A program made the translations under genes and the position numbers. From positions 331,128-395,127 of the IMG/VR virus record IMGVR_UViG_3300024252_000004: a stretch of DNA of 64,000 nucleotides, one strand, 5' to 3'. Within the stretch, counting starts at the first letter, position 1. Every line of letters starts with the position of its first letter. Positions 736 to 62,478 of this stretch are shown here, piece after piece. The notes under the pieces are model-generated. The model was not told where the DNA came from, ran no database searches, and saw nothing but the letters and a program-made list of their open reading frames with translations.

Positions 736-1686
736 ATGGATAGAAAGATTAGAAAATCCCTTTTAGAGGACTTGATCAAAGCTGCTCAAGAGACTGATGA
801 TGATGAAGATGTAAGCTCTTTCATGGGCGATTTCCTCCCTTATGATGAGGGTCAGTTCGGAAACCATGAAGTCTTTATGGAAGACTTCACCACAAGGTTT
901 AGGCCGAAAGATATCAATCAGGCAATCGCTATGTCTAATAATTCCAATTGGATCACGATTCCAGAGGTAGCAAGAAGAAAAGGTTTTCCTCACCTATATG
1001 TCCTTGACCCAGGAAAGGCAACTCCTTATGAAAGATACTTTGGAGTTAAGACTGAGTACGGGTATTTGGACACACCAGCTACAGCGGCGCTCAGAGCAGC
1101 AGTGTTCAACCCTGGTAAGGTGCATCGTTTTGAGGCTAACCAACCAATGCTTGAGATTCCACCAGATTACTCATCTTTACCATCTGGAACAAAGTTTATG
1201 ATATTGGATCCGCAGGCTGAGCAGTCTGTGATTGCGAATGCTTCAAGAATTATGGAAGGTGCGCAAGGGCGACCAGAACATATCAGAAGGGTTAAGATTG
1301 ACGAAACTGGCGCAGGAGAGTTTACCTCTACTCATGGCGGAGACAGACCTAAGTTAACGCCAGGAATGGCAGAGAATGATCCCGAACTTGATTCTAAGCT
1401 AAAGCATCTTGACACCGCAATCGATCGTTTCTATAAGGAAGATAAGGACGGTGGGATGCAACTTCGAAGGCTGCACTCTACAGTTGCAAGATTGAGACAA
1501 ATCCTCGATTCGAAAATTGATGGTTTGGTGTCAGAACAAAGGGATAAGAATAGGGCTTTGAGATTCGAATTCAAGAAAGAAGAGTATGATGATCTAATTA
1601 AGCAAGCGCTTCTAAGAATCATTATCGCAGAGCTTACAGGCGAAGGTTCGCCATTCGAGGGGACAGACCTCGGATTGCTTCAATGA
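736..1686 (+). CDS. hypothetical protein, candidate virion/internal head protein
   Basis: 316 aa, GGAG RBS, N-terminal LIKAAQ followed by acidic stretch, preceded by TACTAATA. Confidence 0.7.
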   Translation: MDRKIRKSLLEDLIKAAQETDDDEDVSSFMGDFLPYDEGQFGNHEVFMEDFTTRFRPKDINQAIAMSNNSNWITIPEVARRKGFPHLYVLDPGKATPYERYFGVKTEYGYLDTPATAALRAAVFNPGKVHRFEANQPMLEIPPDYSSLPSGTKFMILDPQAEQSVIANASRIMEGAQGRPEHIRRVKIDETGAGEFTSTHGGDRPKLTPGMAENDPELDSKLKHLDTAIDRFYKEDKDGGMQLRRLHSTVARLRQILDSKIDGLVSEQRDKNRALRFEFKKEEYDDLIKQALLRIIIAELTGEGSPFEGTDLGLLQ

Positions 1687-2027
1687 ACATAGAGTTTGAA
1701 AAAGATGAAATGATGATAGTGGATGGTCACAGTAAAACCGTTGATGGTTATGTTGTAAAGGACTTTCCAGTATTCGGAATAGCTAAATACAAGTTAAAAG
1801 ACTCGGGAGCCCAGCCTAATTGGCAATGGAGCATTATCCATATCCCGTCAGAAGATATCTTTTCGGATATCTTCAGAACCAAGAAGAGTGCGGAGGAATG
1901 GCTGGACATTTTCTTGGAGGAAACTCAAGGACCAAAACAAATTCTGCTTACGGTCCCTGGTGTAAGATTGATTAGAATTGATTTTGCAGAAGAGATTAGG
2001 ACAACATTCGCAGAATGGAATAGATAG
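1683..2027 (+). CDS. hypothetical protein
   Basis: ATGA overlap with upstream gene, 114 aa. Confidence 0.7.
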   Translation: MNIEFEKDEMMIVDGHSKTVDGYVVKDFPVFGIAKYKLKDSGAQPNWQWSIIHIPSEDIFSDIFRTKKSAEEWLDIFLEETQGPKQILLTVPGVRLIRIDFAEEIRTTFAEWNR

Positions 2028-2037
2028 GGACAAATAA

Positions 2038-2742
2038 ATGAAGAGAGTCGTCATATCCGACATTCACATTGGCAGCCAATATTTTAAGGCGGTTGAGCTT
2101 TTGCGTTTTTTAAGTGAAGTCGAATATGATGAGTTAATTTTAGCAGGGGACATTATTGATTTCATCAAGGTCCCTGAGTTTACTGACCGTGCTTTAGCAA
2201 TCGCACGCACAGTTGATTACTCAAAGACTATCATTTATGTTGTTGGAAATCACGATACCCCGCTCAGAGGGTTTATTGGCAAAGAATTCTTCGGCATCAA
2301 ATTTGTTGACAAATATGAATTTGAAGAAGGCGGAAGAAAGTTTAGGGTTGAGCATGGGGATGCCTACGATCATCCTATTCTTCAGAACAAAATATTTATG
2401 ACGCTACTGTCTATCGTTCACGATGCGATTGAAAAGATCACAGAGTTCGATATAACTACTTGGTGGTCAGATTACAAGATTAAAAAGAGAAAGCTACGAC
2501 GTATCTGGGATATTTTGAAAAAGAATAAAGACGTTGACGTATTTATAATGGGGCATTCGCACCATCCAGAGTTTGTAATTTGGGGACTTCCTGATAAGGA
2601 TGATATTTCTATCAAGACTTATGTAAACACTGGAGATTGGGTCTCGCATCAGACCTATGTTGAAATCATTGACGGAATTGTGAGGTTGAAAGATTATGGA
2701 GCAGGAAACACTGATATTGGATCGGACGAATTTACCGATTAA
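2038..2742 (+). CDS. calcineurin-like metallophosphoesterase (LpxH/YbbF-like)
   Basis: Motifs SDIHIG, GDIID, GNHD, HGD, GHSH, NTGDW. Confidence 0.9.
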   Translation: MKRVVISDIHIGSQYFKAVELLRFLSEVEYDELILAGDIIDFIKVPEFTDRALAIARTVDYSKTIIYVVGNHDTPLRGFIGKEFFGIKFVDKYEFEEGGRKFRVEHGDAYDHPILQNKIFMTLLSIVHDAIEKITEFDITTWWSDYKIKKRKLRRIWDILKKNKDVDVFIMGHSHHPEFVIWGLPDKDDISIKTYVNTGDWVSHQTYVEIIDGIVRLKDYGAGNTDIGSDEFTD

Positions 2743-3385
2743 CGAGTGGCTTAATTACATAGACAGTGAGGGCTGCGGATTAGATTTAGTCATTACCGAC
2801 CCTCCATATCCATTCGATAACAAAAATGGCTCAGGGAGACACTCCTATCATGAAGGTGCCGACCTCATGTATCATAGGATGGACTGGAAGGAACTTCAGA
2901 GTGTTTTTGTCAAGATTAAAGATTTAATGAATGATGGTGGAAGAATCTATGTTTTCTCCAATCGTGATGGATATGAAAAGACGAAACAGCTCATGCTCGA
3001 TGCAGGCTATCGTTACCTTAATACTATCGTTTGGGATAAAGAAAGGTTTGGTGGCGGGTATCACTGGAGGAATTCAGTCGAGTACATCCATTATTTCTGC
3101 AAGCCAAAGAAGCCAGCAGTCCTTGTCAAAGGTGCTCGCAATGTGTTTGAGTATAAGAAGCCTACAAAGAAGTGTGCTATTCCTGAGATTGGTTATGACC
3201 CAGCGTCCAATGACTCTCCGAAGCCTCACGAAATATGGAGAGACATCATATTGCATGGCGGAGCAGAGGGTGATGTAGTAGCAGACCCATTTGCCGGCTC
3301 TGACCCATTGTCAGCAGCACTACTTTTGAACGACGAACTTGCAGAGAAGGTAAGTAGAGCATATACAAATTCTTTTGATGTTTAA
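2696..3385 (+). CDS. N6/N4 DNA methyltransferase-like protein (beta class), deviant C-terminus
   Basis: TDPPY catalytic motif IV near N-terminus, KP motif, DPFAGS motif I near C-terminus. Confidence 0.8.
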   Translation: MEQETLILDRTNLPINEWLNYIDSEGCGLDLVITDPPYPFDNKNGSGRHSYHEGADLMYHRMDWKELQSVFVKIKDLMNDGGRIYVFSNRDGYEKTKQLMLDAGYRYLNTIVWDKERFGGGYHWRNSVEYIHYFCKPKKPAVLVKGARNVFEYKKPTKKCAIPEIGYDPASNDSPKPHEIWRDIILHGGAEGDVVADPFAGSDPLSAALLLNDELAEKVSRAYTNSFDV

Positions 3386-3451
3386 ATAGTTTTTAATCTA
3401 CCCGAAACGTAAAAATGGTTGGAACCTTTTATGTTCTATGGAGATTAAAAC

Positions 3452-5053: not shown

Positions 5054-5337
5054 TGGATGATTTTTTGCTGGTCAATGCAGGACTCAATCTTCAGAAGTTC
5101 GAGAACAATAAGCATTTCTCATTGGAAGAGCACCCTGAGATTATGGAAGCACTTAATGTATTTCCAAATGGGGAGATTTGCGGAATTCGACTTGAAGCAA
5201 TCGAAGAGGTCTTAAACGACACAGAAGTTGACAACATTCGCAATGAACTCAAGGCAGCCCCAAAGCATGTAGAGATTAGATCAGCAAGAGATTTCTTAAA
5301 GGTCATAGCATACTACATTGATATTGAAGAATATTGA
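5053..5337 (+). CDS. hypothetical protein
   Basis: TAATG overlap with groEL, GGAG RBS, 94 aa. Confidence 0.7.
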   Translation: MDDFLLVNAGLNLQKFENNKHFSLEEHPEIMEALNVFPNGEICGIRLEAIEEVLNDTEVDNIRNELKAAPKHVEIRSARDFLKVIAYYIDIEEY

Positions 5338-5353
5338 CCTTAGCAAATAGTTC

Positions 5354-5426: not shown

Positions 5427-6986
5427 GTGCGTAAGCTTGCAGACTTAGAAGTTACAGAGAAGACAGATCCTGCTACCGGAAATAAAATCCGTATTAGCAC
5501 GACTGCTCGTCTTGCGTTGAGAATTATGTTTCCAAAGTTTACTGAAGAAAGGAATGCGAGACTAAATGATCGAATGGCATTCATGTTCAGTAATTCAGCA
5601 GGCAACGTTGTTCACCGTTTCAAATTAGGGAACAAAGATACCGGAGCATGGCGCCCAGCGGAACCAGATTCTGGTGAACAGAATAATAGAGAAGTTGCTG
5701 AAATTAGGTCAGGCCCAGGCGGAGACTTTTTCTTCATTTCTGCTATTAGGCAGGGATACATTGATATCTTAACATTACAAGATAATTGGAAGCAGGGAAA
5801 GCCTAATCAAGGTGGATCAAAAGGTGCTGGCGCAGGAGCCGGTGATGGAGATGTATCTTTGGCGAGTCTGAATATCGACATGAGTATATTCGGAGCTACT
5901 AATAAAACGAATTTGGACAGAAACAGGAGACATAACATGTCAGCATTGCGCATTCTTGCAGATTTAGCAAACAAGTTGGACAGTTTTGGTGAGACCAAGG
6001 CTGCTGATGAAGTAACCAAGATGATAGAGAAGAGAGCTAGGTGGCCTTTTGGAAAGGCGGACGAAGAGGAAGAATTTCCTGCTGCCCCTCCAGTCCCTAA
6101 GCCTCCTGTGTCTCCACAGTCTTCTCCATTTTTAAGAGGAACAATTCCTCCTGCGCCGCCTATGAACCCTGTTGTTACGACCAGTCCGGAAGGTTTCAGC
6201 GATGCTCCAGTTGCTGAACCAGCAGAGTCAAGAGTAGTTGGAAAGCTTGGTCCGATTAGGCCAGACAAAGATCCTTACTCTTACGAATTCCTTCCTTCCG
6301 AAGGTGTCTTCAGAGTTTCCAGCTACACTTATGGGCCAGGAGCGGCCCCTAACCCAAGGGCAGAGAGAGCCGTTGGCGCACATATTACAAGAGAAAATGC
6401 AAGAGCTTGGGCTGTATTGTCCGAGTATGTTCCAGAAGGGGACAAGTCCCCTTCCGAAGGGAGACATCTTCTCACAGAGTCTACAGGTGATCCTGCAAGA
6501 GACTGGAAAGAAGCACAGCTTCAGTTTGCTGGCTGGGTTAACTCAGGACACTTTGGTACTGAACTTCAGAAGAAGTTTAGACTTGCAGACCCGGGTATGC
6601 CAATGCGTCAGCTTATGGATGCAGAGCTTTCTCCAGAGAGTGCGGGATTCCTTGTTGAAAGGTTTGAGGCAATGATTGCTGGAAATGTTCTTTCGGATCT
6701 AAAAGATCCTGAGACTCTCCTCAGATATGCTCTTGAGCTTCAGAACTATGCTCATCTTGCTAACAGGGCAAGGGCAGTAGGTCAGCAGTCAATGAGAGAA
6801 TCTGAGACGGTCATGTCTCCGGGTGGATACCCATCATCATACCCATCATCATCAGAGGCTGAAGATTTCACACTGGCATCTATGGACTCAATAGAGGATA
6901 TAAGAAAGAAGGCATCTGCTAACGTAGATAGGCTTGCAGCACTTTTCACAGTCCCAGGTGGAAGCGGTCCTTTCGGAAGGGACTGA
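5427..6986 (+). CDS. hypothetical Pro/Gly-rich protein, candidate virion protein; internal in-frame start at 5937
   Basis: GTG start after GAGG; upstream TTCTAATA (5393); long ORF; internal TACTAATA + AGGAG + ATG. Confidence 0.75.
   Translation: MRKLADLEVTEKTDPATGNKIRISTTARLALRIMFPKFTEERNARLNDRMAFMFSNSAGNVVHRFKLGNKDTGAWRPAEPDSGEQNNREVAEIRSGPGGDFFFISAIRQGYIDILTLQDNWKQGKPNQGGSKGAGAGAGDGDVSLASLNIDMSIFGATNKTNLDRNRRHNMSALRILADLANKLDSFGETKAADEVTKMIEKRARWPFGKADEEEEFPAAPPVPKPPVSPQSSPFLRGTIPPAPPMNPVVTTSPEGFSDAPVAEPAESRVVGKLGPIRPDKDPYSYEFLPSEGVFRVSSYTYGPGAAPNPRAERAVGAHITRENARAWAVLSEYVPEGDKSPSEGRHLLTESTGDPARDWKEAQLQFAGWVNSGHFGTELQKKFRLADPGMPMRQLMDAELSPESAGFLVERFEAMIAGNVLSDLKDPETLLRYALELQNYAHLANRARAVGQQSMRESETVMSPGGYPSSYPSSSEAEDFTLASMDSIEDIRKKASANVDRLAALFTVPGGSGPFGRD
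5897..5904 (+). promoter_or_regulatory. internal TACTAATA element upstream of nested start 5937
   Basis: Exact motif 40 nt before in-frame ATG with AGGAG RBS (5925-5929). Confidence 0.55.
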
Positions 6987-8563
6987 TGGAGAAAAAGACG
7001 CCGGGGTTTTCATTAGATGATTTAGTTCCATCTGAAGAAGCTGCGTCAGGCATGCACGTTCCTGTAGGGGAGATGATGTTTGCAATCCCGAATAAAGCAG
7101 ATGATGAAGAGATTGAGGAGGAAGGTATGGAAAAGGAAGCCTTAGGCTTGACCAGTATGCCTCAATCTTTATATGGCGGCGAAGTTCTTGACCTGCCAGG
7201 AAGTCCTCAGCCTTCTGGACTCAGCAGAGAACAGGGCGAGGATGAAGAGACTGAATTTTTTGGAGCTAAAGAGGAGGGCGTAGATCTTCCTCCAGAACAT
7301 TACAAAACTCAGAAGAAACAGGGAATCTCAGAAGATGATGAAACAGATGAAGAATTCTTTGACTTCTTATTTACTAACAAAAGTCACAACTTCCTGAGAG
7401 AGGAATCAAACATGAGACACTTAATTGAGAAATTAGCCGAAGGGTTAGATAAGGTTGGAGAAAAGGACGCAGCACTTGTTGCATTGGCACTTACCGACGA
7501 TAGAATAAACTATTCGGAGTCTGTAAAACCTCCTGCACCTGATAATTCTGCCCCTGATTCGAGAAAAGATGAAATCTATAAAAAATTAGTATATGATTTT
7601 GGGATGATTACAGATTGGCTTTATCGCCCAGACGGTGAATTTACACCCAACAAATTAGAGAAAATGTGGGAAATGCTCAAGCAGCGCAAGCCTGCGCTGA
7701 GTGATGACAGAAAAGCGGAATTTATGAGTCTTGCAAAAGAGTGGGGGATGCAAGATCGTTATGGGGAAAGTTCTGCGGAAGAAGTTTCGACCGGCGAAGG
7801 AGTGCTTGCAAAGCCAGCAGAGCAGCCGTCTGGCGGAGTAACTCCGGTAGCTAAGCCAAGATCCGGCTGGGAAGGTTACTTCGCAAATGGTGGACCAAAA
7901 GGCATGAAAGCCGCCTGGGAAGCATGGGTGGCAGCCAACCCTAATCAGGGATATGATGCGTCTTTCTTGTCATGGGTTAAGTGGTACAGGAAGCAGGTTA
8001 CAGATAGAACCATTCCGTCTGGAGGTAATGTAGATGCTGTTCTTAGACTATTAGGAGGGGCTGCTCCCGCAGCGCCAGCCGCAAAAACAGATGAGGCAGC
8101 TAAGCCTGCTGAGGATACTGAGCCACCTATTGCAGAAGAGGGTAAGCCTCCAAGAGAGGCAATGGAAGAATACTTCAGAGCTATTTCTTCTAAGACAAGA
8201 GAAGCGAGAATCGCAGGTCCGTTAAGACTAAGAAACGCAAGAGTCAGAAGAAGAATCAGAAGACTCGGAGATCCAGCAGCGGCAGTAGAAGCTGTTCTCT
8301 CTTTCAGAGGCGGAGGCGATGTTGAGAAGGGTCTTGCGCTTTATGATAGTTATGATCAGACACAGACACCTGAAGGAACAGAAGAGCGCGGTGGCAAAAC
8401 CGTATCAACCTACAAGATGTCTGAGTTCCAAAACAAGGCAGTCAGTGATATCCTTACTCTGAAAGTAAGGGATTATAGAGCTGGCAGAGGACGTACCAGA
8501 AGAAGCGTGGCTTTTGAGGACAGACAAGATCAGCTTCTAAAGATGGCAGCAGAAAATTCCTAA
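6986..8563 (+). CDS. hypothetical acidic protein, candidate virion protein; internal in-frame start at 7412
   Basis: 525-aa ORF, TGATG overlap; internal TACTAACA + GAGG + ATG. Confidence 0.75.
   Translation: MEKKTPGFSLDDLVPSEEAASGMHVPVGEMMFAIPNKADDEEIEEEGMEKEALGLTSMPQSLYGGEVLDLPGSPQPSGLSREQGEDEETEFFGAKEEGVDLPPEHYKTQKKQGISEDDETDEEFFDFLFTNKSHNFLREESNMRHLIEKLAEGLDKVGEKDAALVALALTDDRINYSESVKPPAPDNSAPDSRKDEIYKKLVYDFGMITDWLYRPDGEFTPNKLEKMWEMLKQRKPALSDDRKAEFMSLAKEWGMQDRYGESSAEEVSTGEGVLAKPAEQPSGGVTPVAKPRSGWEGYFANGGPKGMKAAWEAWVAANPNQGYDASFLSWVKWYRKQVTDRTIPSGGNVDAVLRLLGGAAPAAPAAKTDEAAKPAEDTEPPIAEEGKPPREAMEEYFRAISSKTREARIAGPLRLRNARVRRRIRRLGDPAAAVEAVLSFRGGGDVEKGLALYDSYDQTQTPEGTEERGGKTVSTYKMSEFQNKAVSDILTLKVRDYRAGRGRTRRSVAFEDRQDQLLKMAAENS
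7372..7379 (+). promoter_or_regulatory. internal TACTAACA variant element upstream of nested start 7412
   Basis: One mismatch to TACTAATA, 40 nt before in-frame ATG with GAGAGG RBS. Confidence 0.45.
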
Positions 8564-13176: not shown

Positions 13177-13177
13177 T

Positions 13178-19931: not shown

Positions 19932-19936
19932 GGATT

Positions 19937-20140: not shown

Positions 20141-20175
20141 ATGTTTTATTGCCTGCTGTATTGGTTGTGTAAAAT

Positions 20176-47533: not shown

Positions 47534-49922
<2,389 letters not shown>

Positions 49923-52018: not shown

Positions 52019-52805
52019 ATACGCTTTGGATACCGGAATGATTAAAGACTTAGAAACCTTAATAAAGATTTGTCAAACGAATCTTAAGAACTCTCCAGAA
52101 TGCTTAGCATACTTGAGAGACACTAGAGGTATGTCTGAAGCCGCTATCGAAAACCACAAGATTGGCTACTTTCCACAGAGCATTAACATGCTTACAAAGT
52201 ACGTGTCTCGTGCAACCTTAGAAAAATTGAATATCATAGATTACTCCGGAAACTCAAAGTTTGCGGATTTTTACTATCTGGTATTCCCCATTTACAATGA
52301 ATACGGAGAGCCTGTCGGCATTAATGGCAGAACTCTCATTTCCGATACCCAAAGAGAAATGCTTGGAATAGCTAAATATGAAAATAGCTCATTCAAGAAA
52401 AGCACCACACTCTTTGGGTTTAATCGTGCGAGGGGTTCTATCCTTGCCAAGGGAGAAGTATTCGTCTGCGAAGGTAACTTCGACGCAATTCAACTGCAAG
52501 AGAATGGAATTAAAAACTCCGTTGCCATTTGCGGAACAGGATTCTCGAAAGATCATTTCGTTAGATTGGCAAGGTACGCACATACATTCACTTTTGTTCT
52601 CGATAGTGATGACGGAGGGAGGAAGGCCATTTCTCGTATTAACAAGAAATTTATGAACAAGGGTATAAAGCTCAGGTTCCTGTCTCTTCCCGACAAATAT
52701 AAAGATGTAGATGATTTTTTTAGAGCTGGTTATTCCCGAAGAGACTTTTTCGACACACTCACAGAGTGTAGTCCCGAATTAGAAAACATGGAGTGGAAAA
52801 ACTAA
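51993..52805 (+). CDS. dnaG: DnaG-type primase catalytic core (Toprim) lacking zinc-binding domain
   Basis: AYL..RG, IGY, FPI...G..VGINGR, KYENS, VCEGNFD, LDSDDGG, KDVDD. Confidence 0.88.
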   Translation: MMMNREKRKYALDTGMIKDLETLIKICQTNLKNSPECLAYLRDTRGMSEAAIENHKIGYFPQSINMLTKYVSRATLEKLNIIDYSGNSKFADFYYLVFPIYNEYGEPVGINGRTLISDTQREMLGIAKYENSSFKKSTTLFGFNRARGSILAKGEVFVCEGNFDAIQLQENGIKNSVAICGTGFSKDHFVRLARYAHTFTFVLDSDDGGRKAISRINKKFMNKGIKLRFLSLPDKYKDVDDFFRAGYSRRDFFDTLTECSPELENMEWKN

Positions 52806-53266
52806 TGAATAAATCAAAACTTTACCAACACAAGATTGTGGAGATCTCTTTTGATCAGGGCAAACTAAATAACTTCCCTGAGAGCAGAGGCATCGGAAAT
52901 ATGCTTTCCGACAATGAGTCCAACGAACAGATCCAAGACCTGAGAGAGGAGCTATTAGAAGAGATTTATGACATCATTCATGGCGATTCTTTAACCGATC
53001 ATCAGAAAAAGATCCTAATGATGCGCCTTGTTGGAAAAACTCAGAACGAAATTGCTGAACATCTCGGTATCACACAATCTGCCGTGCATAAGGCTTTACA
53101 TGGTAATATTGACTATAAAAATGACAAGAAAAGATATGGCGGAATTATTAAGAAGCTGAAGAAGATTTGTGGCAACAATTCTAACATTCAACGAATATTG
53201 AGACAAATAGAGGAAGCTAAAAATAGTGATCAAATCGCTGATGAGCTTTCTATTAATAAACAGTAG
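52805..53266 (+). CDS. sigma70 region-4-like HTH DNA-binding protein
   Basis: LTDHQKKIL..RLVGKTQNEIAEHLGITQSAVHK. Confidence 0.8.
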   Translation: MNKSKLYQHKIVEISFDQGKLNNFPESRGIGNMLSDNESNEQIQDLREELLEEIYDIIHGDSLTDHQKKILMMRLVGKTQNEIAEHLGITQSAVHKALHGNIDYKNDKKRYGGIIKKLKKICGNNSNIQRILRQIEEAKNSDQIADELSINKQ

Positions 53267-53289: not shown

Positions 53290-53799
53290 ATGACCACAAG
53301 AGAAAAGTATCTTGCAAATATTGACAGAGTGCTTATGAAAACTTTAGCCAAGCAATCAAAGTCTTTGGCCGATAAGAACGCCATTAAGTACGATGATAGT
53401 CTTGTATCGCAAGGTCACATTAGAAAAATTGCATTTGACGTGTATAAAGTTGACAATGATCCTTACAGGGATCTTTGGATTCTTCAGGATGTTGACGGAG
53501 TCCCTCATTTAGTTAGAGCTTCGAACCCACAGTCCGAAGAGACGGTTGTTGGAGAGTGGTCTGCGACATCAGATTATGATAAGAGGAATATCACTTTGGC
53601 ATACAAGAGTAAGCCAATTGCAAGATTTTCTTCTGACACATATGGATTTACCCCTGAAGACGTATTAACATTTAAGGAAGCCCTGCTTGACAAGATTGGT
53701 GCTGATGATGGTTTCCTTAAGGAAGTATTCGCAGAGCAGCCAGAAGCTAAAAAAAGATCCCTCCTTTCAAGCTTCCCTGAGCTTGGCAAATACATTTAA
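53290..53799 (+). CDS. hypothetical protein, candidate virion/morphogenesis protein
   Basis: 169 aa; TATTAATA variant 39 nt upstream; IRKIAFD. Confidence 0.72.
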   Translation: MTTREKYLANIDRVLMKTLAKQSKSLADKNAIKYDDSLVSQGHIRKIAFDVYKVDNDPYRDLWILQDVDGVPHLVRASNPQSEETVVGEWSATSDYDKRNITLAYKSKPIARFSSDTYGFTPEDVLTFKEALLDKIGADDGFLKEVFAEQPEAKKRSLLSSFPELGKYI

Positions 53800-53809
53800 G
53801 GAACAGAAT

Positions 53810-55384
53810 ATGCAGAAGGAAATTTTCGATATAATCAAAGAAGCCCAAAAGGCACTGGAGCAGCTTGAGAATGGCAAGCTCTATACATCTGCATATGTTT
53901 GTGAGAGGTTCGTAAAATCTGCGGAAGAAAACCCGCATGATCTTCTCATCAACAATATGAGGAATGTAGTTCTGAGCAGGCTTCAGACACAACAGTTCGT
54001 TTCTCAGGCAGAGCTTACCGGCATCTATGACCAAATGATTGGCTTGGGTGGCGGACATTCTGCGTTCAGAAATGAGCTTGGAGACTTACTCACTGAGAAG
54101 CGCCAGTATGTAGAGCCAACCAAAACAGCTTCAGCACTTAGAGCCGACCGTGAAGGTGGACTAAGCATTGCTCCTGTAAATCAGGAACTCTCCGATGCAT
54201 TCTCAACTGCATTCGGATTCGGAAAAGACAACTCTTTTGGAACATATGCACCTCAGCAGGGCAACATGGTCAATAAAGTTGTTATCGCAGGATTAACCGC
54301 AGAAGGACAGACTCCTTCCGCAGTTGAAATAGTTTCTGAGAATGAGCACTTCGTATTAGTGGCAGCACTTTACAATGACGGCTTCAACAAAGTAGCAGTT
54401 CATGTTCCTGTCCAGATCAGTGGCGGGATTGTGCAGCCTCCAACAGCACTTGTTCAGGGAGAGGGTACAGTCCCACTCACCAAAGACAGTCTTTGGCTTG
54501 CCATCAAGGAAGCAAGAGACGAAAAAAGGCATGTTGCTCAGCAGAAATTCGCATCCCAGAGAACATTCGGCGAATCTGTTAAGGTAGCTAAGCAGGTTGT
54601 ACCTGCAAGTCTTGAGAAATTTGCACAGTTTGAAACTACATTAGTTTCGGCCTCAACAATGCACTCCGCTAAGTCAGTAGCAGAAGCAGTCACTATGGTG
54701 TCTGATGAGCTTAAGTCATTCGGAGCGTTTAATCCACAGGTAAAAATAGTAACGGCATCTGATAGAGAAATCGTATTCGATGCACATGTCCCTACAGAAA
54801 AGGGTATGGCAGTCGTTAAGGTTCCCGTCGAGATTCACAATGATCATCCAAACCTGCCGAACAGATTTGCAGCCGCAACTTCTGATGTAGAGCAGGTTTA
54901 TGATTTCAGCCAAGCAGGATATGCAAGGTTCCTTTCCGATGTGAAGGGTAACAGCAGAACTGTTAAGGTTGCGAGACATACCGGAAACCTATCGACAGCG
55001 TCTTACCACGAGCTTAACGACATGATGCTAAAAGGAATTTCGACTAAGGATTACACGCTTGCAGAGAATGCACTTTCGGTCATTCAGAACCGCTTCGACT
55101 CTTCACAGTTCAAAGCAGCATTTGATAAGTTCACTCAGTTATTAAAGCATTCCTCTACCGATCAGGACTCTGAAAGAGCCAAGCACATTGAGGCTGCGGT
55201 TCAGAGAGGAGACCTTATCAAGCACTCTACGACTGTTGAGCTTTACTGTCCTAAACTTGCTCTTCCATTGAGCAAAATTGCATTCGATAGCCAGGGTCGT
55301 CCGGTACCGGCAAGAACACATCGGGCTCAGAACGCAAATGAGGAAGAAGTTTTTATTTCCTCTTATGATATTAAGTTCAGCTAA
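53810..55384 (+). CDS. hypothetical protein, candidate virion/morphogenesis protein
   Basis: ATG 53810 after AAGGA; many K-x-A motifs; internally repeated V.VPV(Q/E)I unit. Confidence 0.75.
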   Translation: MQKEIFDIIKEAQKALEQLENGKLYTSAYVCERFVKSAEENPHDLLINNMRNVVLSRLQTQQFVSQAELTGIYDQMIGLGGGHSAFRNELGDLLTEKRQYVEPTKTASALRADREGGLSIAPVNQELSDAFSTAFGFGKDNSFGTYAPQQGNMVNKVVIAGLTAEGQTPSAVEIVSENEHFVLVAALYNDGFNKVAVHVPVQISGGIVQPPTALVQGEGTVPLTKDSLWLAIKEARDEKRHVAQQKFASQRTFGESVKVAKQVVPASLEKFAQFETTLVSASTMHSAKSVAEAVTMVSDELKSFGAFNPQVKIVTASDREIVFDAHVPTEKGMAVVKVPVEIHNDHPNLPNRFAAATSDVEQVYDFSQAGYARFLSDVKGNSRTVKVARHTGNLSTASYHELNDMMLKGISTKDYTLAENALSVIQNRFDSSQFKAAFDKFTQLLKHSSTDQDSERAKHIEAAVQRGDLIKHSTTVELYCPKLALPLSKIAFDSQGRPVPARTHRAQNANEEEVFISSYDIKFS

Positions 55385-55393
55385 GGAGTGGCT

Positions 55394-56326
55394 ATGACAA
55401 GATTAGAATTCATTCTTAGGCAGGCGGGTACAAATCGCAAACTGAGAAGCGCACTTAGAGGTGCTTATGCCGAAGAGTTAGAGAAAGTTGCTCAGCAAGG
55501 TATCCTTCAGGATTATCAGGGCGAAAAAACTAACTACGGCACAAGAGAGCAATTGCTCACCGAGAGAGGAACTTCTGATAAGGCGGACCAGCTTTACGGC
55601 GTAAACCCCGCAGAATACGGTACGCCTGAAATTGCAGACAGACCATTAAGTGAGTCTCTTTCTACAAGGTATGTCCCAGGTAAGCCTGGGGTATCTGCCG
55701 AAAGGGTTCGCGGAACAAATGGCGGCGTTTACAAAGATCCAAACACTAACAAGATTTATGATTGGAATGAGGGCTTTACTGACGAACAGGGCCAGAAGTA
55801 TCAGGGTAGCAGCGTACAAGGACAGACCGAAATGTTCTCTTATTCTGAGATTTGTGATCCTGACAAGTTAGTCAAAACAGCATCTGAGGATTACGACATT
55901 GCAACTTTCGGAACAGAAGCTCCTTTTGTAAAGATTAGTGTTTATGAAGATGATGATGAATATGAAGGTATGATTGCTTACTACAAAACCGCAGAAGATA
56001 TTGAGGCCAATAAGCTTTATGCGACAGGAAGCTACTTGTATGATAAAGATGGCAGTGAGGATCCTGTTGCTGGCAGAATATACGCAGAGACTTTGACAAT
56101 TCACAGCGAGCCGGGTATTGACTTTGTTCTTTCTGATAGGATAACTCCGGATGAGTTCCTGAGACTTATGCATGAAAACTTTACAGTAGTTTCCCTTACT
56201 GGAGCCTCTTACAGTCCTCCGATTAGTGATGAGGGATTCGATGCTCAGTTTGATGATTTCGAAGCAAAAAGGGATTGGGATGAAGGTAGAGACGAATACG
56301 CTGGATTCAAAATCTCCTCGGAATAA
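55394..56326 (+). CDS. hypothetical protein, candidate virion protein
   Basis: ATG after AAGGAG; EKVAQ, VKTAS motifs. Confidence 0.72.
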   Translation: MTRLEFILRQAGTNRKLRSALRGAYAEELEKVAQQGILQDYQGEKTNYGTREQLLTERGTSDKADQLYGVNPAEYGTPEIADRPLSESLSTRYVPGKPGVSAERVRGTNGGVYKDPNTNKIYDWNEGFTDEQGQKYQGSSVQGQTEMFSYSEICDPDKLVKTASEDYDIATFGTEAPFVKISVYEDDDEYEGMIAYYKTAEDIEANKLYATGSYLYDKDGSEDPVAGRIYAETLTIHSEPGIDFVLSDRITPDEFLRLMHENFTVVSLTGASYSPPISDEGFDAQFDDFEAKRDWDEGRDEYAGFKISSE

Positions 56327-56341
56327 AAACAAAGCACAAAA

Positions 56342-56389
56342 ACAAAAGTAGAGCCTGCCCGGTACAAATAAGGCAGGCTTTACTTTTGT
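56342..56389 (+). terminator. terminator hairpin
   Basis: ACAAAAGTAGAGCCTGCC-loop-GGCAGGCTTTACTTTTGT. Confidence 0.75.
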
Positions 56390-56403
56390 AGAAGGAGTTA
56401 TTT

Positions 56404-57111
56404 ATGGGCAGCAAAGTATTACGACATCCAGAGAAAGAAGAGATTATCTCCAAGCTATTGCAGGGAGAGTCTGTTAAGCAGGTCGAAAATTGGCTAAAGA
56501 AGAAACATCCAAAAACAAAGCGTCTCCACATCACATCCATGACTTTGCAGAAGTTCAGGAAGGAGTACCTTAATCTTGAAGGCGAAGCCCTGGAACAGAT
56601 TAAGGCTGCCAGAAAGAATTTTACAAAGGACTCTAAGGCTCTTGAAAAGCAGGCTATGGTTATGGCATCGAATTCTTACCAGGAAAAGCTCGCGGAGATT
56701 ATTGATGAGGAGATTGATGTCACTAGAAAGATGCTTGAAATGGAAAAGATTATCTCTTCCAGAATCGAGTATTACTTTAATTCTCTCAACAGTGGAGCTA
56801 ACCTTAGAGAGGAGCGAGTTTTCATTGAACTTTTGACTCAGCAAAGAGAGCTTCTTAGAGATTGGAAGAAATATGTTGAACGGGTTCCTGACCAGACAAT
56901 CGACCACAATATTAATATCAATGTAGTTAATGAGCAACTCACTGTTCTTAAGAGTATCGTTTTCGAAGTTCTTAAGGAACTTGACCCGACTTTGATTCCG
57001 GTTTTCGTTGAGAAGCTAAATTCTAAAATGGTAGATACACAGTACAACAATCAAAGATATTTGGACTATGTAGAGCCAGAGGTTAAAATTATCGATGTCA
57101 GTAACGATTAA
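56404..57111 (+). CDS. N-terminal HTH + coiled-coil protein, possible terminase small subunit
   Basis: SKVLRHPEKEEIISKLLQGESVKQVENWL HTH-like start; helical body; upstream of terL; function is inference. Confidence 0.55.
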   Translation: MGSKVLRHPEKEEIISKLLQGESVKQVENWLKKKHPKTKRLHITSMTLQKFRKEYLNLEGEALEQIKAARKNFTKDSKALEKQAMVMASNSYQEKLAEIIDEEIDVTRKMLEMEKIISSRIEYYFNSLNSGANLREERVFIELLTQQRELLRDWKKYVERVPDQTIDHNININVVNEQLTVLKSIVFEVLKELDPTLIPVFVEKLNSKMVDTQYNNQRYLDYVEPEVKIIDVSND

Positions 57112-57361
57112 TACAACGGAAAATCAGGAAAGGTATGCGGATCTCACACTCAGGGATATTGAAAGTGCTGCTGCATTCTCATCTTGGCTGTCTCAACACT
57201 TAGTTACTTATGCTACTGGAACAGTAAGTAAAGAGCACTTGTTAATATTCCTTACATATATACAGGATCGTATTGACGAGACAGATTCGGCTGATGGCCT
57301 TATGTGGAAAAAAGCAATAGTCGATCTGAAAAGTAGATTAGGAGACGACAGTGGACTTTAA
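57095..57361 (+). CDS. hypothetical protein
   Basis: 88-aa ORF overlapping neighbours. Confidence 0.6.
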   Translation: MSVTINTTENQERYADLTLRDIESAAAFSSWLSQHLVTYATGTVSKEHLLIFLTYIQDRIDETDSADGLMWKKAIVDLKSRLGDDSGL

Positions 57362-58856
57362 GAAGGAACTTATAGCGCTAAAGACAGAGCTTCCAAACCT
57401 CGGAATCCCCGAAGGTAAGGAGGCTATTGCTGTTAGTGTCTATAACATCTACAAACATCACGGTGTCTCTCCAACTGAGGAGATCATCCGTTTTGCAATG
57501 GACGTAAAGCTTCCTCCAAAGAATCACAACGATTACTACTATTTAGCCACAGTCGCTTATCTCAGAAATAATGGAATTAAAAAAGTCGCATATCCGTTAG
57601 GACATGGGGCTTTGAGCGAAGATTTAGAAGAAGAGTTTGATCTGGAGAAATGGTCAGGACTCGTACATAAAATTTACGAAGCAGTTCAAAGCGGAGATAT
57701 GTCTTATAGTTTTGCACTGGATTACTACTCTGGAGAACTCGATACTTCTCGACAAGAAGGCCATAAGTTTAAGGAGTGGGTTAAGTACTATAAGAATGGT
57801 GAGCATCTTAAGTATGACATTAGAGCAAGCAGGAGCAACGAAATGGAAAAAAAAGCAGATTTCCAATTTCCATTAAGCGGTTCAGGATTCTATCCGGCAG
57901 AGACCAAGCAGGTCTCTAAAGAGCGCGTGGAAGTTGATAACAAGAAAGGCGATTTCGAAGAGTGGAAAAGCAAACTCTACGTTGCTATCAGAAGACTTGA
58001 TAAGCTAATCAGACAGGGCGATCCACATATGAATTCAGATATTCATGCGGACCTCGCAGACCTTCTGCATGCTTTTGATATGGAAGTTAGAAAGGTAAGG
58101 CTTGCCTCTACTGCATCTGACCTTACCAAAAGAGCTGCTTTGGCTTTCAAAACTAAAGGTCTCAACGAACATGCAGATACTCTATATGCGTTAGCACAAG
58201 AGACTCCGCTTCCGCCAGAGATTGATGCAGCCCCAGATGATATTCTTGGAGACGAGCCACTTGGTGGCGGTTTGACCGAGGAGCCTGAGGTTCCTGGCGC
58301 AGAGGGTGAAATCCCTGGCGCAGCGCCAGAAAGTATTGGGGCAGGTACACCCGTTGGAACAGCGCTGAAAGGAGGAACGGGACCTAAGCCTGGAGAGTAC
58401 GAAGCTCTTAGCGGAGACATCACTCTCGATCAGGCATCTCGAAAGCTTGAAGAGATTGCAGGAAGACTTGCGGACAGACGAGTTATCCGTTTGCTTGCGG
58501 AGTTCGATATCATGCTTGATCAGCTTGGCGTGGCTCCAATGTTTCCCGAGCTTCCGGAAGCCCAGAGCAAGCTCATTGATAGTTACTCTTATGCATTAAC
58601 TCGTGTCACCAAGATGCTTGGTATGCTTTCTTCAGGGAAAAGTCTTTCGGAAATTGCTGACGCAAAAGAAACTGAGATTCAGAAGGGCGTAGACAAGGAC
58701 ACTGCGAAGACATTCAATGCTGGCGCAGAAGAGGACGCACCAAAGGGAACTGAGGCTATTGCTGACGAATTTGGCGCTACAACAGAACTTCCGCCGGAGC
58801 CAGGACAGGACGCTCCACAGCCGGCAGAAGCACCTCCTATTGACGAAGAGGTATAA
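57351..58856 (+). CDS. hypothetical protein, candidate virion/head assembly protein
   Basis: GTG start after AGGAG; KKVAY, KKAD, ALAQ motifs; Pro/Glu-rich linkers. Confidence 0.75.
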   Translation: MDFKKELIALKTELPNLGIPEGKEAIAVSVYNIYKHHGVSPTEEIIRFAMDVKLPPKNHNDYYYLATVAYLRNNGIKKVAYPLGHGALSEDLEEEFDLEKWSGLVHKIYEAVQSGDMSYSFALDYYSGELDTSRQEGHKFKEWVKYYKNGEHLKYDIRASRSNEMEKKADFQFPLSGSGFYPAETKQVSKERVEVDNKKGDFEEWKSKLYVAIRRLDKLIRQGDPHMNSDIHADLADLLHAFDMEVRKVRLASTASDLTKRAALAFKTKGLNEHADTLYALAQETPLPPEIDAAPDDILGDEPLGGGLTEEPEVPGAEGEIPGAAPESIGAGTPVGTALKGGTGPKPGEYEALSGDITLDQASRKLEEIAGRLADRRVIRLLAEFDIMLDQLGVAPMFPELPEAQSKLIDSYSYALTRVTKMLGMLSSGKSLSEIADAKETEIQKGVDKDTAKTFNAGAEEDAPKGTEAIADEFGATTELPPEPGQDAPQPAEAPPIDEEV

Positions 58857-58860
58857 GTAA

Positions 58861-59625
58861 ATGAACTTGGGAGAAACCCTATCATTAGTTGCACAGATTG
58901 CCGAAAGGTATTTGGTCGATAAGCCCTACATTGTTGGTGGCTTACCAAGAGACGTGTATCTGAAAAAGGAGATCAAGACAACTGATGTTGATTTGACAAC
59001 TAATTCTCCCGATGTCTTAAGGCTCGGCATCCTCGTGGCTAACGAAATGAATGCCACTTTCGAGCTATCAGATGATGGGCATTTGACCGCATTCACAGAT
59101 TCTTTTGATCTTGATTTCTCAAGTAACTTTATCTCTGAAGGCGTAGTTGAATACCTTGGTGATAAGCATCAAGAATATCACGAAGCATACAGTAGAGACT
59201 TCACGATCAATACCCTGCATCAGGATCTATTGACCAGAGAAATTGTAGATCCGACAGGGCAAGGTTTTGAAGACATCAAAAATAAGATCATCAGAACTCC
59301 TGTACCTCCACACATCACACTGGAAGATGATCCGAGGAGGATCTATCGTGCAGTGAATCTTGCTGCAAGATATGGATACAGAATTGATCCTACGATTGTT
59401 GAGTTCGTTCTTGAAAACCCAGAAATCTTTTCTTCAGAGAATGTAAAAGACAAGTACATCTCTGTTAAAATTGCGAAGGCACTCAAAGAAGATGCTGAGC
59501 TAACCCTTCACTTGTTAAGGGAGCTTGATCTTTTGAAGAATGTACCATTAAGTGGCTACTTCAAAGATGTGCTTATCTCTAAAAAACTTCTTGTTGAATA
59601 CTTGGGCGAGGAAAAAGATGATTAA
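58861..59625 (+). CDS. class II tRNA nucleotidyltransferase (CCA-adding / poly(A) polymerase family), short form
   Basis: YIVGGLPRD, DVD, RDFTIN, DPTG.G..DI, DDPRRIYRA. Confidence 0.9.
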   Translation: MNLGETLSLVAQIAERYLVDKPYIVGGLPRDVYLKKEIKTTDVDLTTNSPDVLRLGILVANEMNATFELSDDGHLTAFTDSFDLDFSSNFISEGVVEYLGDKHQEYHEAYSRDFTINTLHQDLLTREIVDPTGQGFEDIKNKIIRTPVPPHITLEDDPRRIYRAVNLAARYGYRIDPTIVEFVLENPEIFSSENVKDKYISVKIAKALKEDAELTLHLLRELDLLKNVPLSGYFKDVLISKKLLVEYLGEEKDD

Positions 59626-60529
59626 GAACGCAGGATATCTTGCCTCTTCTTGGGAAGAATATTCCGAACAAGGCCCGGCATTTAAAGAGATTGAGGTTTG
59701 GTGGAAAAATAATTGGCAGAAAGTTCCTGGCAGTCAAGGTCCGGATTACAATAGCTGGACAGACTGGTATGTAACGAAGTATTATGGAGAGTGGGGAGGA
59801 ATACACCGTGGGCCCGAAGAAGCCTTAAAGGTTATGCAGGGGGAGCAGGGAGCGCCTAAAGCTGGGATTACTCCGGGCTCCGTATCTCAAAGAGGCAGAG
59901 GAATTGGTGAGCGCCTCAAAGGCGTAAAACAAATGTTTAACGGCAAATTACCAAGAGGGCAATTCCCTGGCAAAAACAACGGAATTAACTTCGGAGATTT
60001 AAGCGACGAAACTCAGGAATTTCTCAAAACAATTACCGAAGTTGCGAAAGAGCTTGGCGTTCAGAAACCATTCGTTACAAGCGGATACAGAAGTCCATCT
60101 GCTCAAGCAAGAGTTATGGCAAATAACTGGAAAAAGAAAGGCGGGTCCGCGCCTCTTTCACCGAGAGAGCTTGAGCTTCTTGGTGCTTCATTATCTCAGA
60201 AGCTTTCAGCAGGATTGGATGGAAGGCCGATCACAAAAGGCGCAGTTTACCTTTACAATCTATATCAAATAAAGCCTTTTGCATTATTTGTTAACAACAC
60301 CCTACATGATTACGGTGTGAACAGAGAAAGTAAAGGCATAGTTGCAGACTGGATTCAGGCAAATGTTCCATTGCGTTCGCATATGGGGCAGCCTGCTACT
60401 TCTGTTGACCTAAGGTTAACACAAGATATTAAAAAAGTTCTCGATGTCGTAACACAGTCTGGGGAATTTACTTTGGGAGTCCTATTCGAGGGCGATCATT
60501 ATCACGTAAGAGTCAAGGAAATGGCTTAA
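59618..60529 (+). CDS. peptidase M15-like (LAS) peptidoglycan hydrolase with Trp-rich N-terminal domain
   Basis: VTSGYRS...Q, SH......SVD, EGDHYHV. Confidence 0.7.
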   Translation: MIKNAGYLASSWEEYSEQGPAFKEIEVWWKNNWQKVPGSQGPDYNSWTDWYVTKYYGEWGGIHRGPEEALKVMQGEQGAPKAGITPGSVSQRGRGIGERLKGVKQMFNGKLPRGQFPGKNNGINFGDLSDETQEFLKTITEVAKELGVQKPFVTSGYRSPSAQARVMANNWKKKGGSAPLSPRELELLGASLSQKLSAGLDGRPITKGAVYLYNLYQIKPFALFVNNTLHDYGVNRESKGIVADWIQANVPLRSHMGQPATSVDLRLTQDIKKVLDVVTQSGEFTLGVLFEGDHYHVRVKEMA

Positions 60530-60532
60530 ACA

Positions 60533-60540
60533 TACTAATA
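60533..60540 (+). promoter_or_regulatory. TACTAATA putative late promoter element
   Basis: Exact motif, intergenic, 33 nt before ATG 60566. Confidence 0.55.
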
Positions 60541-60565
60541 TTCATTGCTTTTTTTGGAACAATCG

Positions 60566-60838
60566 ATGAAAGAAACTATTATAAACAAATTAGATGACGA
60601 ACCGGTGACTATAGATCTTGAGGAAGAAGATGAAGAAGAAGAGCTTGATGTCAAAACTCAAGCTGAGGAATCTTCTAATATTCCTATAGATGGTAGTCCA
60701 GTGTATCCGCACATATATGTTGGCAATTCAGGTATTCCTGACATGGTCGATTATGATGAGAGCGGATACAGGGGAGATAATTATATGATTTGGCATGATA
60801 TTTTTCCAGATATTTCTGCCGGCAGCATTCATGGGTAA
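60566..60838 (+). CDS. small acidic hypothetical protein
   Basis: ORF after TACTAATA. Confidence 0.6.
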   Translation: MKETIINKLDDEPVTIDLEEEDEEEELDVKTQAEESSNIPIDGSPVYPHIYVGNSGIPDMVDYDESGYRGDNYMIWHDIFPDISAGSIHG

Positions 60839-60851
60839 GGAGTTTTACACA

Positions 60852-61859
60852 ATGTCAAAAAACGTAGTCACAGAATACACAGAAGATACAGAGTTTTTCA
60901 AGTCTTCCCAATGGGCAGGAGACTTGGTTGAGTTTTCTGAAGAAACAAGTGTAGAGGATGGCATGACACCTCCAGATAATGGTGTCGCACAATTCGAAAC
61001 AATAGTGGAATTTGATGAGGAAGAAGCTGATCTCCTTGAAGATATGGAGTCTTCTTTGTCTCAGTCTGTAGAGGGCAATGAAGTTGGCGAGCCAACAGTT
61101 GTTGAATTCTCAGAGGAACTTCCAGGCGCAGTAGAAGAGATGGAAGAAGAGGAAGTATCCTCAGCAGCAGACGCAGTTAGAATGCTTCCAGGCTCAAGCA
61201 TCAGTCTCGCAGATGACGAGGAAGATAAAGTAGAGGAGGTAGATGATACCCCTGGTACTTGGAGAGATGACGGAGATGTCAGAGATTTCTCAAATTATCT
61301 TCAGGATGCCTACAACAGTCCTCCGCAGCACCAGGGCGAAATGCTTGGATGCGAAAGAGTGATCAATTACTACAAGGGCCTCGACAAAGAAATCTCCAAG
61401 GCCCTATCTCTTGATAAGGATCATATCTTAGATGTTGGTGAGCTTGATGGAGTTAGGGTTAACATGATGAATGATATGTTAACTTTGAAGCAGCACATTA
61501 AGAAGCTTCAGAGAGGCATCAGAGAGCAGCACGGAAAGAAAGCTGCTGATGGCACTACTATGAAGATCGCAGGAAGCGATGTGGAATTATCAAAAGAAGC
61601 CACAGTTGCAAGACCGCAGCTTATGATGACTGCTTTTGAAAGAGCAATTACCGGAATGGTTGTTAACGCAGTTGTATCTTCTGGAAAATCTTTTGAAGAT
61701 GTGTATGACATTCTTAAGAATAAGTATGCATTTACAGACAGAGAGGAACTTGCATTAATGCAGTTGTTCGCTGATATGGGATATCAGGTTTTCAAAGATA
61801 GGGGTTCTTATGGAAAAGAATCTTCTGAAGTTGATTTCATGAGAAGCTATTTCGCATAA
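60852..61859 (+). CDS. acidic hypothetical protein, candidate head/scaffold-type protein
   Basis: ATG after AAGGAG; very acidic N-half; KKAA, KIAG, KEAT. Confidence 0.75.
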   Translation: MSKNVVTEYTEDTEFFKSSQWAGDLVEFSEETSVEDGMTPPDNGVAQFETIVEFDEEEADLLEDMESSLSQSVEGNEVGEPTVVEFSEELPGAVEEMEEEEVSSAADAVRMLPGSSISLADDEEDKVEEVDDTPGTWRDDGDVRDFSNYLQDAYNSPPQHQGEMLGCERVINYYKGLDKEISKALSLDKDHILDVGELDGVRVNMMNDMLTLKQHIKKLQRGIREQHGKKAADGTTMKIAGSDVELSKEATVARPQLMMTAFERAITGMVVNAVVSSGKSFEDVYDILKNKYAFTDREELALMQLFADMGYQVFKDRGSYGKESSEVDFMRSYFA

Positions 61860-61869
61860 GGAGAATGGA

Positions 61870-62478
61870 ATGAGTAAAATTACAAGACAAGATGGAGTCA
61901 CCGAGCAATACGGTGTCATGCAGGACTGGCTAGTTCTCTTTGCTCATGAGCTTGAGAAGAAGGGTTATTTAGAAAACCTAAAGCCTATTTCTCGCAGAAA
62001 GCATTTTCACTCAATTGAAGAAAAGATGGCGGACATCAAGGAAAGAATTGGCTTTGATGTCGTCAGCAAGCTTACGGAAGAACTCGAAGACATCAGCAAA
62101 GAAGCTCAGACAAAAACCGCATGTGGATGCGGTGGCTCTTGCTGCGAAGTCAAAACAGCAAATTATGAACATCCTGAAAGGGATGTGAAAAGGATGCGCA
62201 ATATTCTTAGCTACATCAATGATATGGCTAAATCAGAATCTCACTTAAGTGCTACCGCAATTCTGTCAAAATGTAGAGACGCGGAAGGACTTGGGTTCAA
62301 TAGTCTTCGCATTGATGAAGGAAAGCTTAAGGGCTATGTTGACGACTTACTTTCAAAGTATAGCGATGATTTGGATGAGGACATTAGGTATGAGAAGAGA
62401 GAGATAGAGCCAGTATCTTCTAACACTGGTCTCGATCAGGCAGATTACTACAGTCATGCGCGTCCAGATTCCTTTTAA
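61870..62478 (+). CDS. hypothetical protein
   Basis: AGGAG RBS; KEAQ, KTACGCGG, KTAN. Confidence 0.75.
   Translation: MSKITRQDGVTEQYGVMQDWLVLFAHELEKKGYLENLKPISRRKHFHSIEEKMADIKERIGFDVVSKLTEELEDISKEAQTKTACGCGGSCCEVKTANYEHPERDVKRMRNILSYINDMAKSESHLSATAILSKCRDAEGLGFNSLRIDEGKLKGYVDDLLSKYSDDLDEDIRYEKREIEPVSSNTGLDQADYYSHARPDSF

Follow-up and report, generated by a model that had tools for sequence, protein, structure and literature searches.

We analysed the distribution of the tripeptide pattern K-x-A (Lys, any residue, Ala) in proteins encoded by the final 64 kb of a 395,127-bp IMG/VR phage contig (IMGVR_UViG_3300024252_000004, positions 331,128 to 395,127; this 64,000-nucleotide stretch is called the window below), with nearly all genes on the plus strand. 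K-x-A was in excess in a block of open reading frames (ORFs) at 53290-62478, directly upstream of the large terminase gene, and in the head module beyond it, including a protease-scaffold fusion protein, and the excess recurred in the head modules of a complete relative (G001) and of Bacillus phage G. Judging from these sequence patterns, we consider it probable, if well short of certain, that the prohead (head-maturation) protease of this phage recognises K-x-A as a P3-x-P1 motif.

Genes were called with our own simple codon-bias caller. For each set of proteins, we compared the K-x-A count with its within-protein expectation or with within-protein shuffles, and ranked K-x-A among all 400 a-x-b residue pairs at positions i and i+2. 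The block held 38 K-x-A versus 15.9 expected (p = 1.7e-6, rank 1/400), the last 16 kb of the window 53 versus 27.1 (p = 6.6e-6, rank 1/400), and the block together with the recovered head module 97 versus 54.7 (p = 1.5e-7, rank 1). The 452 genes outside the window, covering the other ~330 kb of the contig, showed no excess (390 versus 385). The enrichment proposed for testing by an earlier reading of the letters of the window (the sequence-only reading) was thus present, in a smaller set of ORFs than that reading had listed. Removing only the block from the contig left 504 versus 474, and the first 48 kb of the window gave 99 versus 78, with half of this excess supplied by the disordered proteins of ORFs 5427 and 6986. 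Every example peptide quoted in the sequence-only reading was found in the ORF named for it, and the 11 ORFs that it cited carried 60 K-x-A versus 34.4 in within-protein shuffles when pooled (z = 5), these ORFs having been picked for motif presence and the pooled excess stemming from a subset of them: 53810, 60852, 61870, 6986 and 5427 were enriched, and 736, 32272, 57351 and 59618 were not.

The signal was strict in spacing and direction. Other spacings were flat in the last 16 kb (KA 20 versus 27, KxxA 26 versus 27, KxxxA 34 versus 26.9), as were gaps 1 and 3 in the block plus head module set, and neither the reversed motif A-x-K nor the variants K-x-S and K-x-G were enriched. The proposed extension of the motif to Arg or a hydrophobic residue at the first position had to be dropped, R-x-A reaching 1.14x and [LIVMF]-x-A being depleted to 0.77x (142 versus 185 in the module). 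Codons inside K-x-A were used as in the background and the excess was confined to the coding frame; the signal therefore lies at the protein level, and a DNA-level motif was excluded on these grounds. If helical, K/A-rich scaffold-like proteins simply tended to place Lys two residues before Ala, the excess would be a structural by-product with no reader, which would agree with the predicted helicity of many K-x-A carriers, with scaffold regions rich in Lys, Ala, Glu and Arg and with K-x-A conserved inside the folded protease domain. We find this improbable, since helicity or K/A composition would raise KA, KxxA, KxxxA and A-x-K too, none of which was raised in this phage, in G001, in phage G or in 130 homologous protease-scaffold fusions (gaps 1 and 3 flat); moreover, helical proteins elsewhere in the three genomes had no excess, and sites turned over between orthologs while their count stayed. 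Local K/A-rich composition or helical periodicity was rejected on the flat counts for gaps 1, 3 and 4 and for A-x-K.

The window's contig breaks off within the terminase gene and for this reason lacks the head module. The alignment of the terminase to its relatives ended exactly at the contig end, with the last ~94 residues of the relatives unmatched in the contig, and a sister contig of the same phage extended 692 bp further, completing the terminase at 599 aa and reaching a portal gene behind it. A second sister contig (99.9% identical over 6 kb) spanned the gap and provided the ~19,050 bp with the head module missing from the window's contig. With ~19 kb missing, the genome therefore measures ~414 kb and its CheckV status of 100% complete is wrong. 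Circular closure of the contig via the terminase ORF was considered and rejected, the end-to-start read-through being accidental by the alignment stop and by the sister contig sequence. Three sister contigs likewise end within ~700 bp of the terminase break point. The recovered genes encode, in order, the portal (588 aa), a 290-aa protein, a 605-aa DUF192-type protein, the 1141-aa protease-scaffold fusion, proteins of 214, 230, 312, 931 and 210 aa, and the major capsid protein (339 aa). The head protease gene lies neither in the window nor in its contig, and Pfam S77/S78 had no match in that contig; the protease, which the sequence-only reading had proposed to seek elsewhere in the genome, was recovered on the sister contig, where its gene follows the last gene of the window at a distance of ~5 kb downstream. 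It sits between the portal and major capsid genes, in the same order in G001 and phage G.

The fusion protein of this phage carried 19 K-x-A versus 9.8 expected, including KTA-SDLG at residue 1104, 37 residues before the C-terminus, and 25 fusion orthologs carried 507 versus 223 (rank 1). A search of 1.84 billion representatives retrieved 1400 relatives of the fusion protein, and among the best 150 the 130 full-length sequences were all above expectation (130/130; in total 2669 versus 1638). K-x-A occurred within the last 60 residues in 121 of these 130, with Ser as by far the commonest next residue (90 sites); a preference for Ser at P1' was seen only there, at the scaffold C-terminus, and in phage G. 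The DUF192-type protein encoded between portal and protease was also enriched as a family (2.6x, rank 1), and its members in this phage and in G001 rank with the proteins richest in K-x-A (Table 1). In capsid proteins, K-x-A was confined to the first ~70 residues, partly in an N-terminal extension absent from phage G, and the portal sites lay at positions 17 and 58.

To assign the protease domain, we modelled the N-terminal 330 residues of the fusion with AlphaFold2 (AF2; predicted local distance difference test, pLDDT, 83; predicted template-modelling score 0.71). The top Foldseek matches of this model were herpesvirus proteases (probability up to 0.97) and T4 gp21, and VIA-align gave Z = 10.0 to T4 gp21 (5jbl), 9.9 to 1vzv and 8-9.9 to the proteases of varicella-zoster virus, pseudorabies virus and herpes simplex virus 2, with unrelated MCE-domain matches scoring lower (Z of about 6.5). 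The modelled domain is thus of the assemblin/T4 gp21 fold. Residues D133-H134 and S185 were invariant in 50 sequences, which makes His134 and Ser185 candidates for the catalytic His and Ser. Pfam-A recognised neither phage G gp19 nor the protease domain from a marine relative; the sole curated profile to match the protease was the PHROG "head maturation protease" phrog_18299 (E = 5e-13).

We repeated the counts in two independent genomes, with the enriched block delimited by homology in G001, as in the other relatives, and by a fixed 20-kb bin in phage G, its boundaries in the window's genome having been set post hoc. The genome of G001, a relative at ~40% identity, is complete at 335 kb and bears terminal repeats. 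Its K-x-A excess was found only at 70-110 kb, where RecA, primase, sigma-like, terminase, portal, protease-scaffold and capsid genes follow in this order, and its block at 78.5-106 kb held 97 versus 58.5 (rank 1/400), compared with 346 versus 360 in the remaining genome. Among cultured phages the nearest relative is Bacillus phage G (497 kb), the largest of them, with a capsid protein 50% identical, a protease (gp19) 33% identical and a protein, gp21, of which a portion can be aligned with the C-terminal region of the fusion. Only the first of its 25 bins of 20 kb, running from the terminase to gp21, was enriched (57 versus 31.6, rank 1). The protease gp19 was the most enriched protein of that genome (8 versus 2.45 in the annotated ORF), gp7 (14 versus 7.3) and gp21 (7 versus 2.8) were also in the top four, and the capsid protein and terminase had zero K-x-A. 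At the phage G sites, P2 was preferentially Thr, and P1' preferentially Ser or Ala. K-x-A thus ranked 1/400 in each of three genomes, between which protein identity does not exceed 35-50%. Searching the whole phage G record with the 53810 protein found nothing, and the other proteins of the block had no homologs in its first 32 kb, the only part searched with them.

Conservation was assessed on ortholog families drawn from about 80 related loci (Table 1). The 53810 protein has 47 homologs (34-92% identity) of near-constant length, and each of the 38 aligned sequences exceeded expectation, with 5-17 K-x-A against ~3.5 (in total 451 versus 135). Sites of this family were scattered over ~69 alignment columns; individual sites therefore turn over while their number is kept. 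The families of 53290, 61870 and 60852 were also enriched, and the 55394 orthologs in four relatives and in G001 were each at or above expectation. In four relatives, the genes that run from the ortholog of 53290 up to the terminase were enriched 2-2.8x, still ~2x after removal of the 53810 family, and the replication genes upstream of them showed no enrichment; the syntenic relatives in which the signal recurred are 35-45% identical. Depletion was found in the terminase and sigma-like families and in the orthologs of two small head-module proteins (0.2-0.27x). These are likely non-substrates and their depletion counts in favour of a protease motif, as the terminase and sigma-like protein would be expected to avoid it if they are exposed to the protease without being cut. 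Chance combined with selection bias could invoke the commonness of the pattern, the four of the 11 cited ORFs without excess and the post hoc block boundaries; we give it next to no credence and rejected it on the unbiased contig, family and independent-genome tests, namely the top rank in three genomes with G001 and phage G delimited as above, and the excess in all 38 aligned 53810 homologs and all 130 full-length fusions.

As a control, we ran the same 400-pair scan blind on T4 gp20, gp67, gp68, gp21, gp22, gp23 and gp24. The established cleavage motif of T4 gp21 is (L/I)-x-E, and the scan gave rank 1 to I-x-E and rank 3 to L-x-E, the scaffold gp22 (16 versus 5.7) and the protease gp21 (7 versus 2.55) being most enriched in their own motif and T4 tail and helicase control proteins showing no enrichment. 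A proven motif behaves likewise, and the K-x-A pattern therefore looks like that of a prohead protease.

Under the proposed mechanism, the protease would be the N-terminal assemblin/T4-gp21-fold domain of the 1141-aa fusion, and its cut would fall after Ala, often before Ser. Inside the prohead it would trim itself, with K43-x-A45, on the N-terminal border of the folded domain, as one candidate site and the K-x-A-S ~37 residues from the C-terminus, placed like the herpesvirus M-site, as another; it would degrade its own scaffold part, clip capsid and portal proteins in their N-terminal arms, and cut a group of core or internal proteins that assemble with it, which may comprise the products of ORFs 53290, 53810, 60852 and 61870 and probably 55394. 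That these products enter the prohead is suggested only by the position of their genes between the sigma-like and the terminase and portal genes. The K-x-A maturation code suggested by the sequence-only reading thus gained several independent lines (restriction to the module, protease and scaffold as carriers, the fold, the C-terminal site), all of them indirect.

What the sequences show is the K-x-A excess, its specificity, its location, its conservation despite turnover of sites, and the fold of the protease; cleavage at K-x-A, a cut after Ala and packaging of the window ORF products are what we infer. Several points weigh against cleavage. Family totals ignore phylogenetic non-independence within families, and the excess is 1.6-3x, so that many single K-x-A are chance occurrences. 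This phage shows no flanking-residue preference around K-x-A, and K67 and K119 begin conserved K-x-A that are buried within the protease fold itself. Enrichment of 2.2x (128 versus 58, rank 9) was also seen for the family of the DnaG-type primase, which is not a head protein; it may reflect conserved positions or be a genuine exception. No product of the block has a recognisable structural domain in Pfam or PHROG, and one is a nucleotidyltransferase. In the 53810 family, most sites fall in helices that are predicted with confidence (3.5 per 100 residues versus 1.0 in coil), and a protein with so well conserved a fold would be broken up by twelve cuts. The AF2 model of this protein (pLDDT 71) has two repeated alpha/beta domains, residues 148-249 and 287-377 being an internal duplication of a helix, 4-5 strands and a long helix; the model had no match in the PDB or ESM Atlas, and the protein may represent a fold family that is new and is conserved throughout the relatives.

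These helical sites in confidently folded regions would fit binding better than cutting, as expected if K-x-A were an uncleaved linear motif with another reader, such as a scaffold or capsid docking site, a lysine-modifying enzyme or a chaperonin signal (the window holds two Cpn60 genes, at 3452 and 48252). Enrichment, specificity and restriction to the module indeed demonstrate a selected protein-level motif and not its reader. We nevertheless regard another reader as unlikely: none is known or was identified, K-x-A is carried most strongly by the protease and its scaffold, and known processing sites have the same terminal placement as the K-x-A near the scaffold C-terminus and in the N-terminal arms of capsid and portal. 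Moreover, the P3-x-P1 spacing is, to our knowledge, common to all characterised assemblin-fold proteases, and the T4 control behaved identically for a proven cleavage motif. Rival readings are thus weakened by the strictness of the signal in spacing and direction and by the terminal placement of sites, and recognition by the prohead protease is the reading that we retain.

More tentatively, a megaphage-wide family of assemblin-fold protease-scaffold proteins (more than 1000 clusters at 50% identity, including marine relatives of 330-415 kb and phage G) may use Lys-x-Ala(-Ser) instead of x-x-Glu, which would make it the first phage group with a herpesvirus-like P1-Ala/P1'-Ser specificity and the products of 53290-62478 new prohead core or internal proteins. 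Our search found no paper describing a K-x-A phage cleavage motif, a phage G virion mass-spectrometry paper lying outside that search. If K-x-A is a cleavage code, sequence alone would mark the probable head-internal proteins of a large marine megaphage clade with hardly any annotation, and of phage G. It would also offer a phage counterpart of the herpesvirus Ala/Ser specificity, bearing on the evolution of specificity in a family of proteases that tailed phages and herpesviruses have in common. As the 400-pair scan recovered the T4 motif blind, it provides a simple general way to guess protease specificity from uncultivated phage genomes, and the K-x-A prediction can be checked in a cultured system, phage G.

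Features of the window and of the DUF192-type proteins are summarized in Table 1; gene identities in the right-hand part of the window come from synteny with relatives and from Pfam.

Table 1. Features, K-x-A counts (observed versus expected) and ortholog families; positions are those of the window unless another sequence is named.
Feature	Position	Strand	K-x-A	Ortholog family	Description
ORF 736	736..1686	+	2 vs 1.5	G001 ortholog 0 vs 2.5	not enriched
Cpn60/GroEL-type chaperonin 1	3452-5053				PF00118 E = 1.5e-62
ORFs 5427 and 6986	5427..8563	+	6 vs 2.7 (5427); 8 vs about 3.7-3.8 (6986)		519 aa and 525 aa; low-complexity, Pro/Glu-rich; moderate excess
ORF 32272	32272..38355	+	11 vs 12.4		2027 aa; not enriched
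DNA polymerase III alpha	39786				
Cpn60/GroEL-type chaperonin 2	48252-49922			211 vs 158.8, 1.33x, rank 41/400	orthologs annotated Cpn60_TCP1
RecA	50405			91 vs 125.7, 0.72x, rank 208/400	
DnaG-type primase	51993-52805				
Sigma-70 region-4-like protein	52805..53266	+		58 orthologs, 4 vs 41.6, 0.1x, rank 172/400	weak Sigma70_r4_2 matches on orthologs; adjoins the enriched block upstream
ORF 53290	53290..53799	+	3 vs 1.3	60 orthologs, 152 vs 54.9, 2.8x, rank 2/400	169 aa; first after sigma-like gene; candidate substrate
ORF 53810	53810..55384	+	12 vs 3.5	66 orthologs, 752 vs 236, 3.2x, rank 1/400	524 aa; strongest K-x-A carrier; candidate head-core/internal protein
ORF 55394	55394..56326	+	3 vs 1.1		310 aa; weak candidate substrate
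ORF 56404	56404..57111	+	3 vs 0.9	60 orthologs, 62 vs 58.5, 1.06x, rank 84/400	235 aa; excess not conserved in orthologs
ORF 57351	57351..58856	+	4 vs 4.1	309 vs 222.7, 1.39x, rank 34/400	501 aa; not enriched
Nucleotidyltransferase (58861)	58861..59625	+	1 vs 0.8	1.55x	PolyA_pol / tRNA nucleotidyltransferase head domain; PF01743 E = 5.8e-13, phrog_2244 E = 1.9e-21
ORF 59618	59618..60529	+	2 vs 1.5		303 aa; not enriched
ORF 60852	60852..61859	+	5 vs 1.2, p = 0.004	47 orthologs, 138 vs 71.9, 1.9x, rank 12/400	335 aa; candidate substrate
ORF 61870	61870..62478	+	4 vs 1.0	44 orthologs, 138 vs 60.6, 2.3x, rank 2/400	202 aa; directly upstream of large terminase; candidate substrate
Large terminase subunit	62488..64000	+		39 orthologs, 24 vs 101, 0.24x, rank 389/400	504 of 599 codons, cut by contig end; phrog_675 E = 2e-54, PF05876
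Intergenic TACTAAT	687, 28349, 32217, 51650, 60533 (60533..60539)	+			eight more in contig
DUF192-type protein, this phage	ORF 3339-5156 of the recovered head module, sister contig L241	reverse	10 vs 3.7		605 aa
DUF192-type protein, G001	G001, 95210-97072		12 vs 3.6		620 aa; PF02643 E = 3e-20

Ten ORFs lie between the sigma-like gene and the terminase, nine of them unannotated and the tenth (58861) encoding the nucleotidyltransferase. The protein of ORF 60852 has an acidic N-terminus and its K-x-A are clustered at residues 229-250. The string KTACG is common to ORF 61870 and the protease linker; it is not kept in the 61870 family and was taken as a coincidence. ORF 53290 had no Pfam or PHROG match, a fold and function search with ORF 57351 gave none, and ORFs 5427 and 6986 had no Pfam match. 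Neither of these two has a full-length ortholog in G001, where 5427 is matched over 125 aa only and 6986 not at all. Two Cpn60/GroEL-type chaperonin genes are held by this single window. Seven tandem paralogs of ~190 aa are encoded in G001 at 25-2837 and 19334-20511, with ~21% Ala and zero K-x-A versus ~15.6 expected, and had no homolog in the window's contig. The G001 terminase and portal (87366-94109) measure 957 and 1286 aa, versus 599 and 588 aa in the window's phage; the portal insert matches families often carrying inteins, and inteins are therefore likely.

The sequence-only reading had grouped the K-x-A proteins as ORFans of a TACTAAT class. This grouping did not hold, as most K-x-A-rich ORFs (53290-59618 and 61870) have no preceding intergenic TACTAAT. 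The box itself is plausibly promoter-like, resembling a -10-type element: 13 of the 26 plus-strand copies of TACTAAT(A) were intergenic, though intergenic sequence makes up 12% of the contig, and they lay mostly 21-60 nt upstream of start codons.

Compared with known systems, the inferred protease resembles T4 gp21 in its predicted fold, in the P3-x-P1 spacing and in the location of its gene between portal and capsid genes, and in both phages the motif is ~2x over-represented in head-core proteins, most in the scaffold and protease. T4 gp21 has Glu at P1 and Leu or Ile at P3, where Ala and Lys would stand here; it is a separate 212-aa protein, whereas the protease is here fused to a scaffold of ~800 residues, and Pfam Peptidase_S77 gives no match on the protease domains studied here. 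The phiKZ gp175 and SPN3US gp245 proteases recognise (S/A/G)-x-E, as shown by mass spectrometry, self-cleave near their own C-terminus, and the motif occurs in multiple copies in many head proteins, internal or ejected ones included (PMC5694885, PMC10052503, PMC9026906). These are also giant phages, but their motif ends in Glu where the sequence pattern suggests Ala here, and they are unrelated, the capsid protein here being of the phage G type (50% identity). Phage G (Donellivirus) shares the K-x-A excess in the same head module, from the gp14 portal to the gp27 capsid protein, and differs in that its protease (300 aa) and putative scaffold gp21 are encoded by separate genes and its capsid protein is without the ~45-residue N-terminal extension.

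Herpesvirus assemblin cleaves (V/L)-x-A before Ser at its M and R sites. Its protease is likewise fused in frame to the scaffold, its fold matches that of our model (Z = 8-9.9), the Ala predicted at P1 and the frequent Ser at P1' agree with its own, and its conserved site a few dozen residues before the scaffold C-terminus has a candidate counterpart here. Assemblin differs by Val or Leu at P3, where Lys is expected here and [LIVMF]-x-A is depleted; identity is only 10-16%, candidate sites per protein are far more numerous here, and the virus studied here infects bacteria. The kind of system is well known, and the Lys-x-Ala specificity proposed for it would be the new element.

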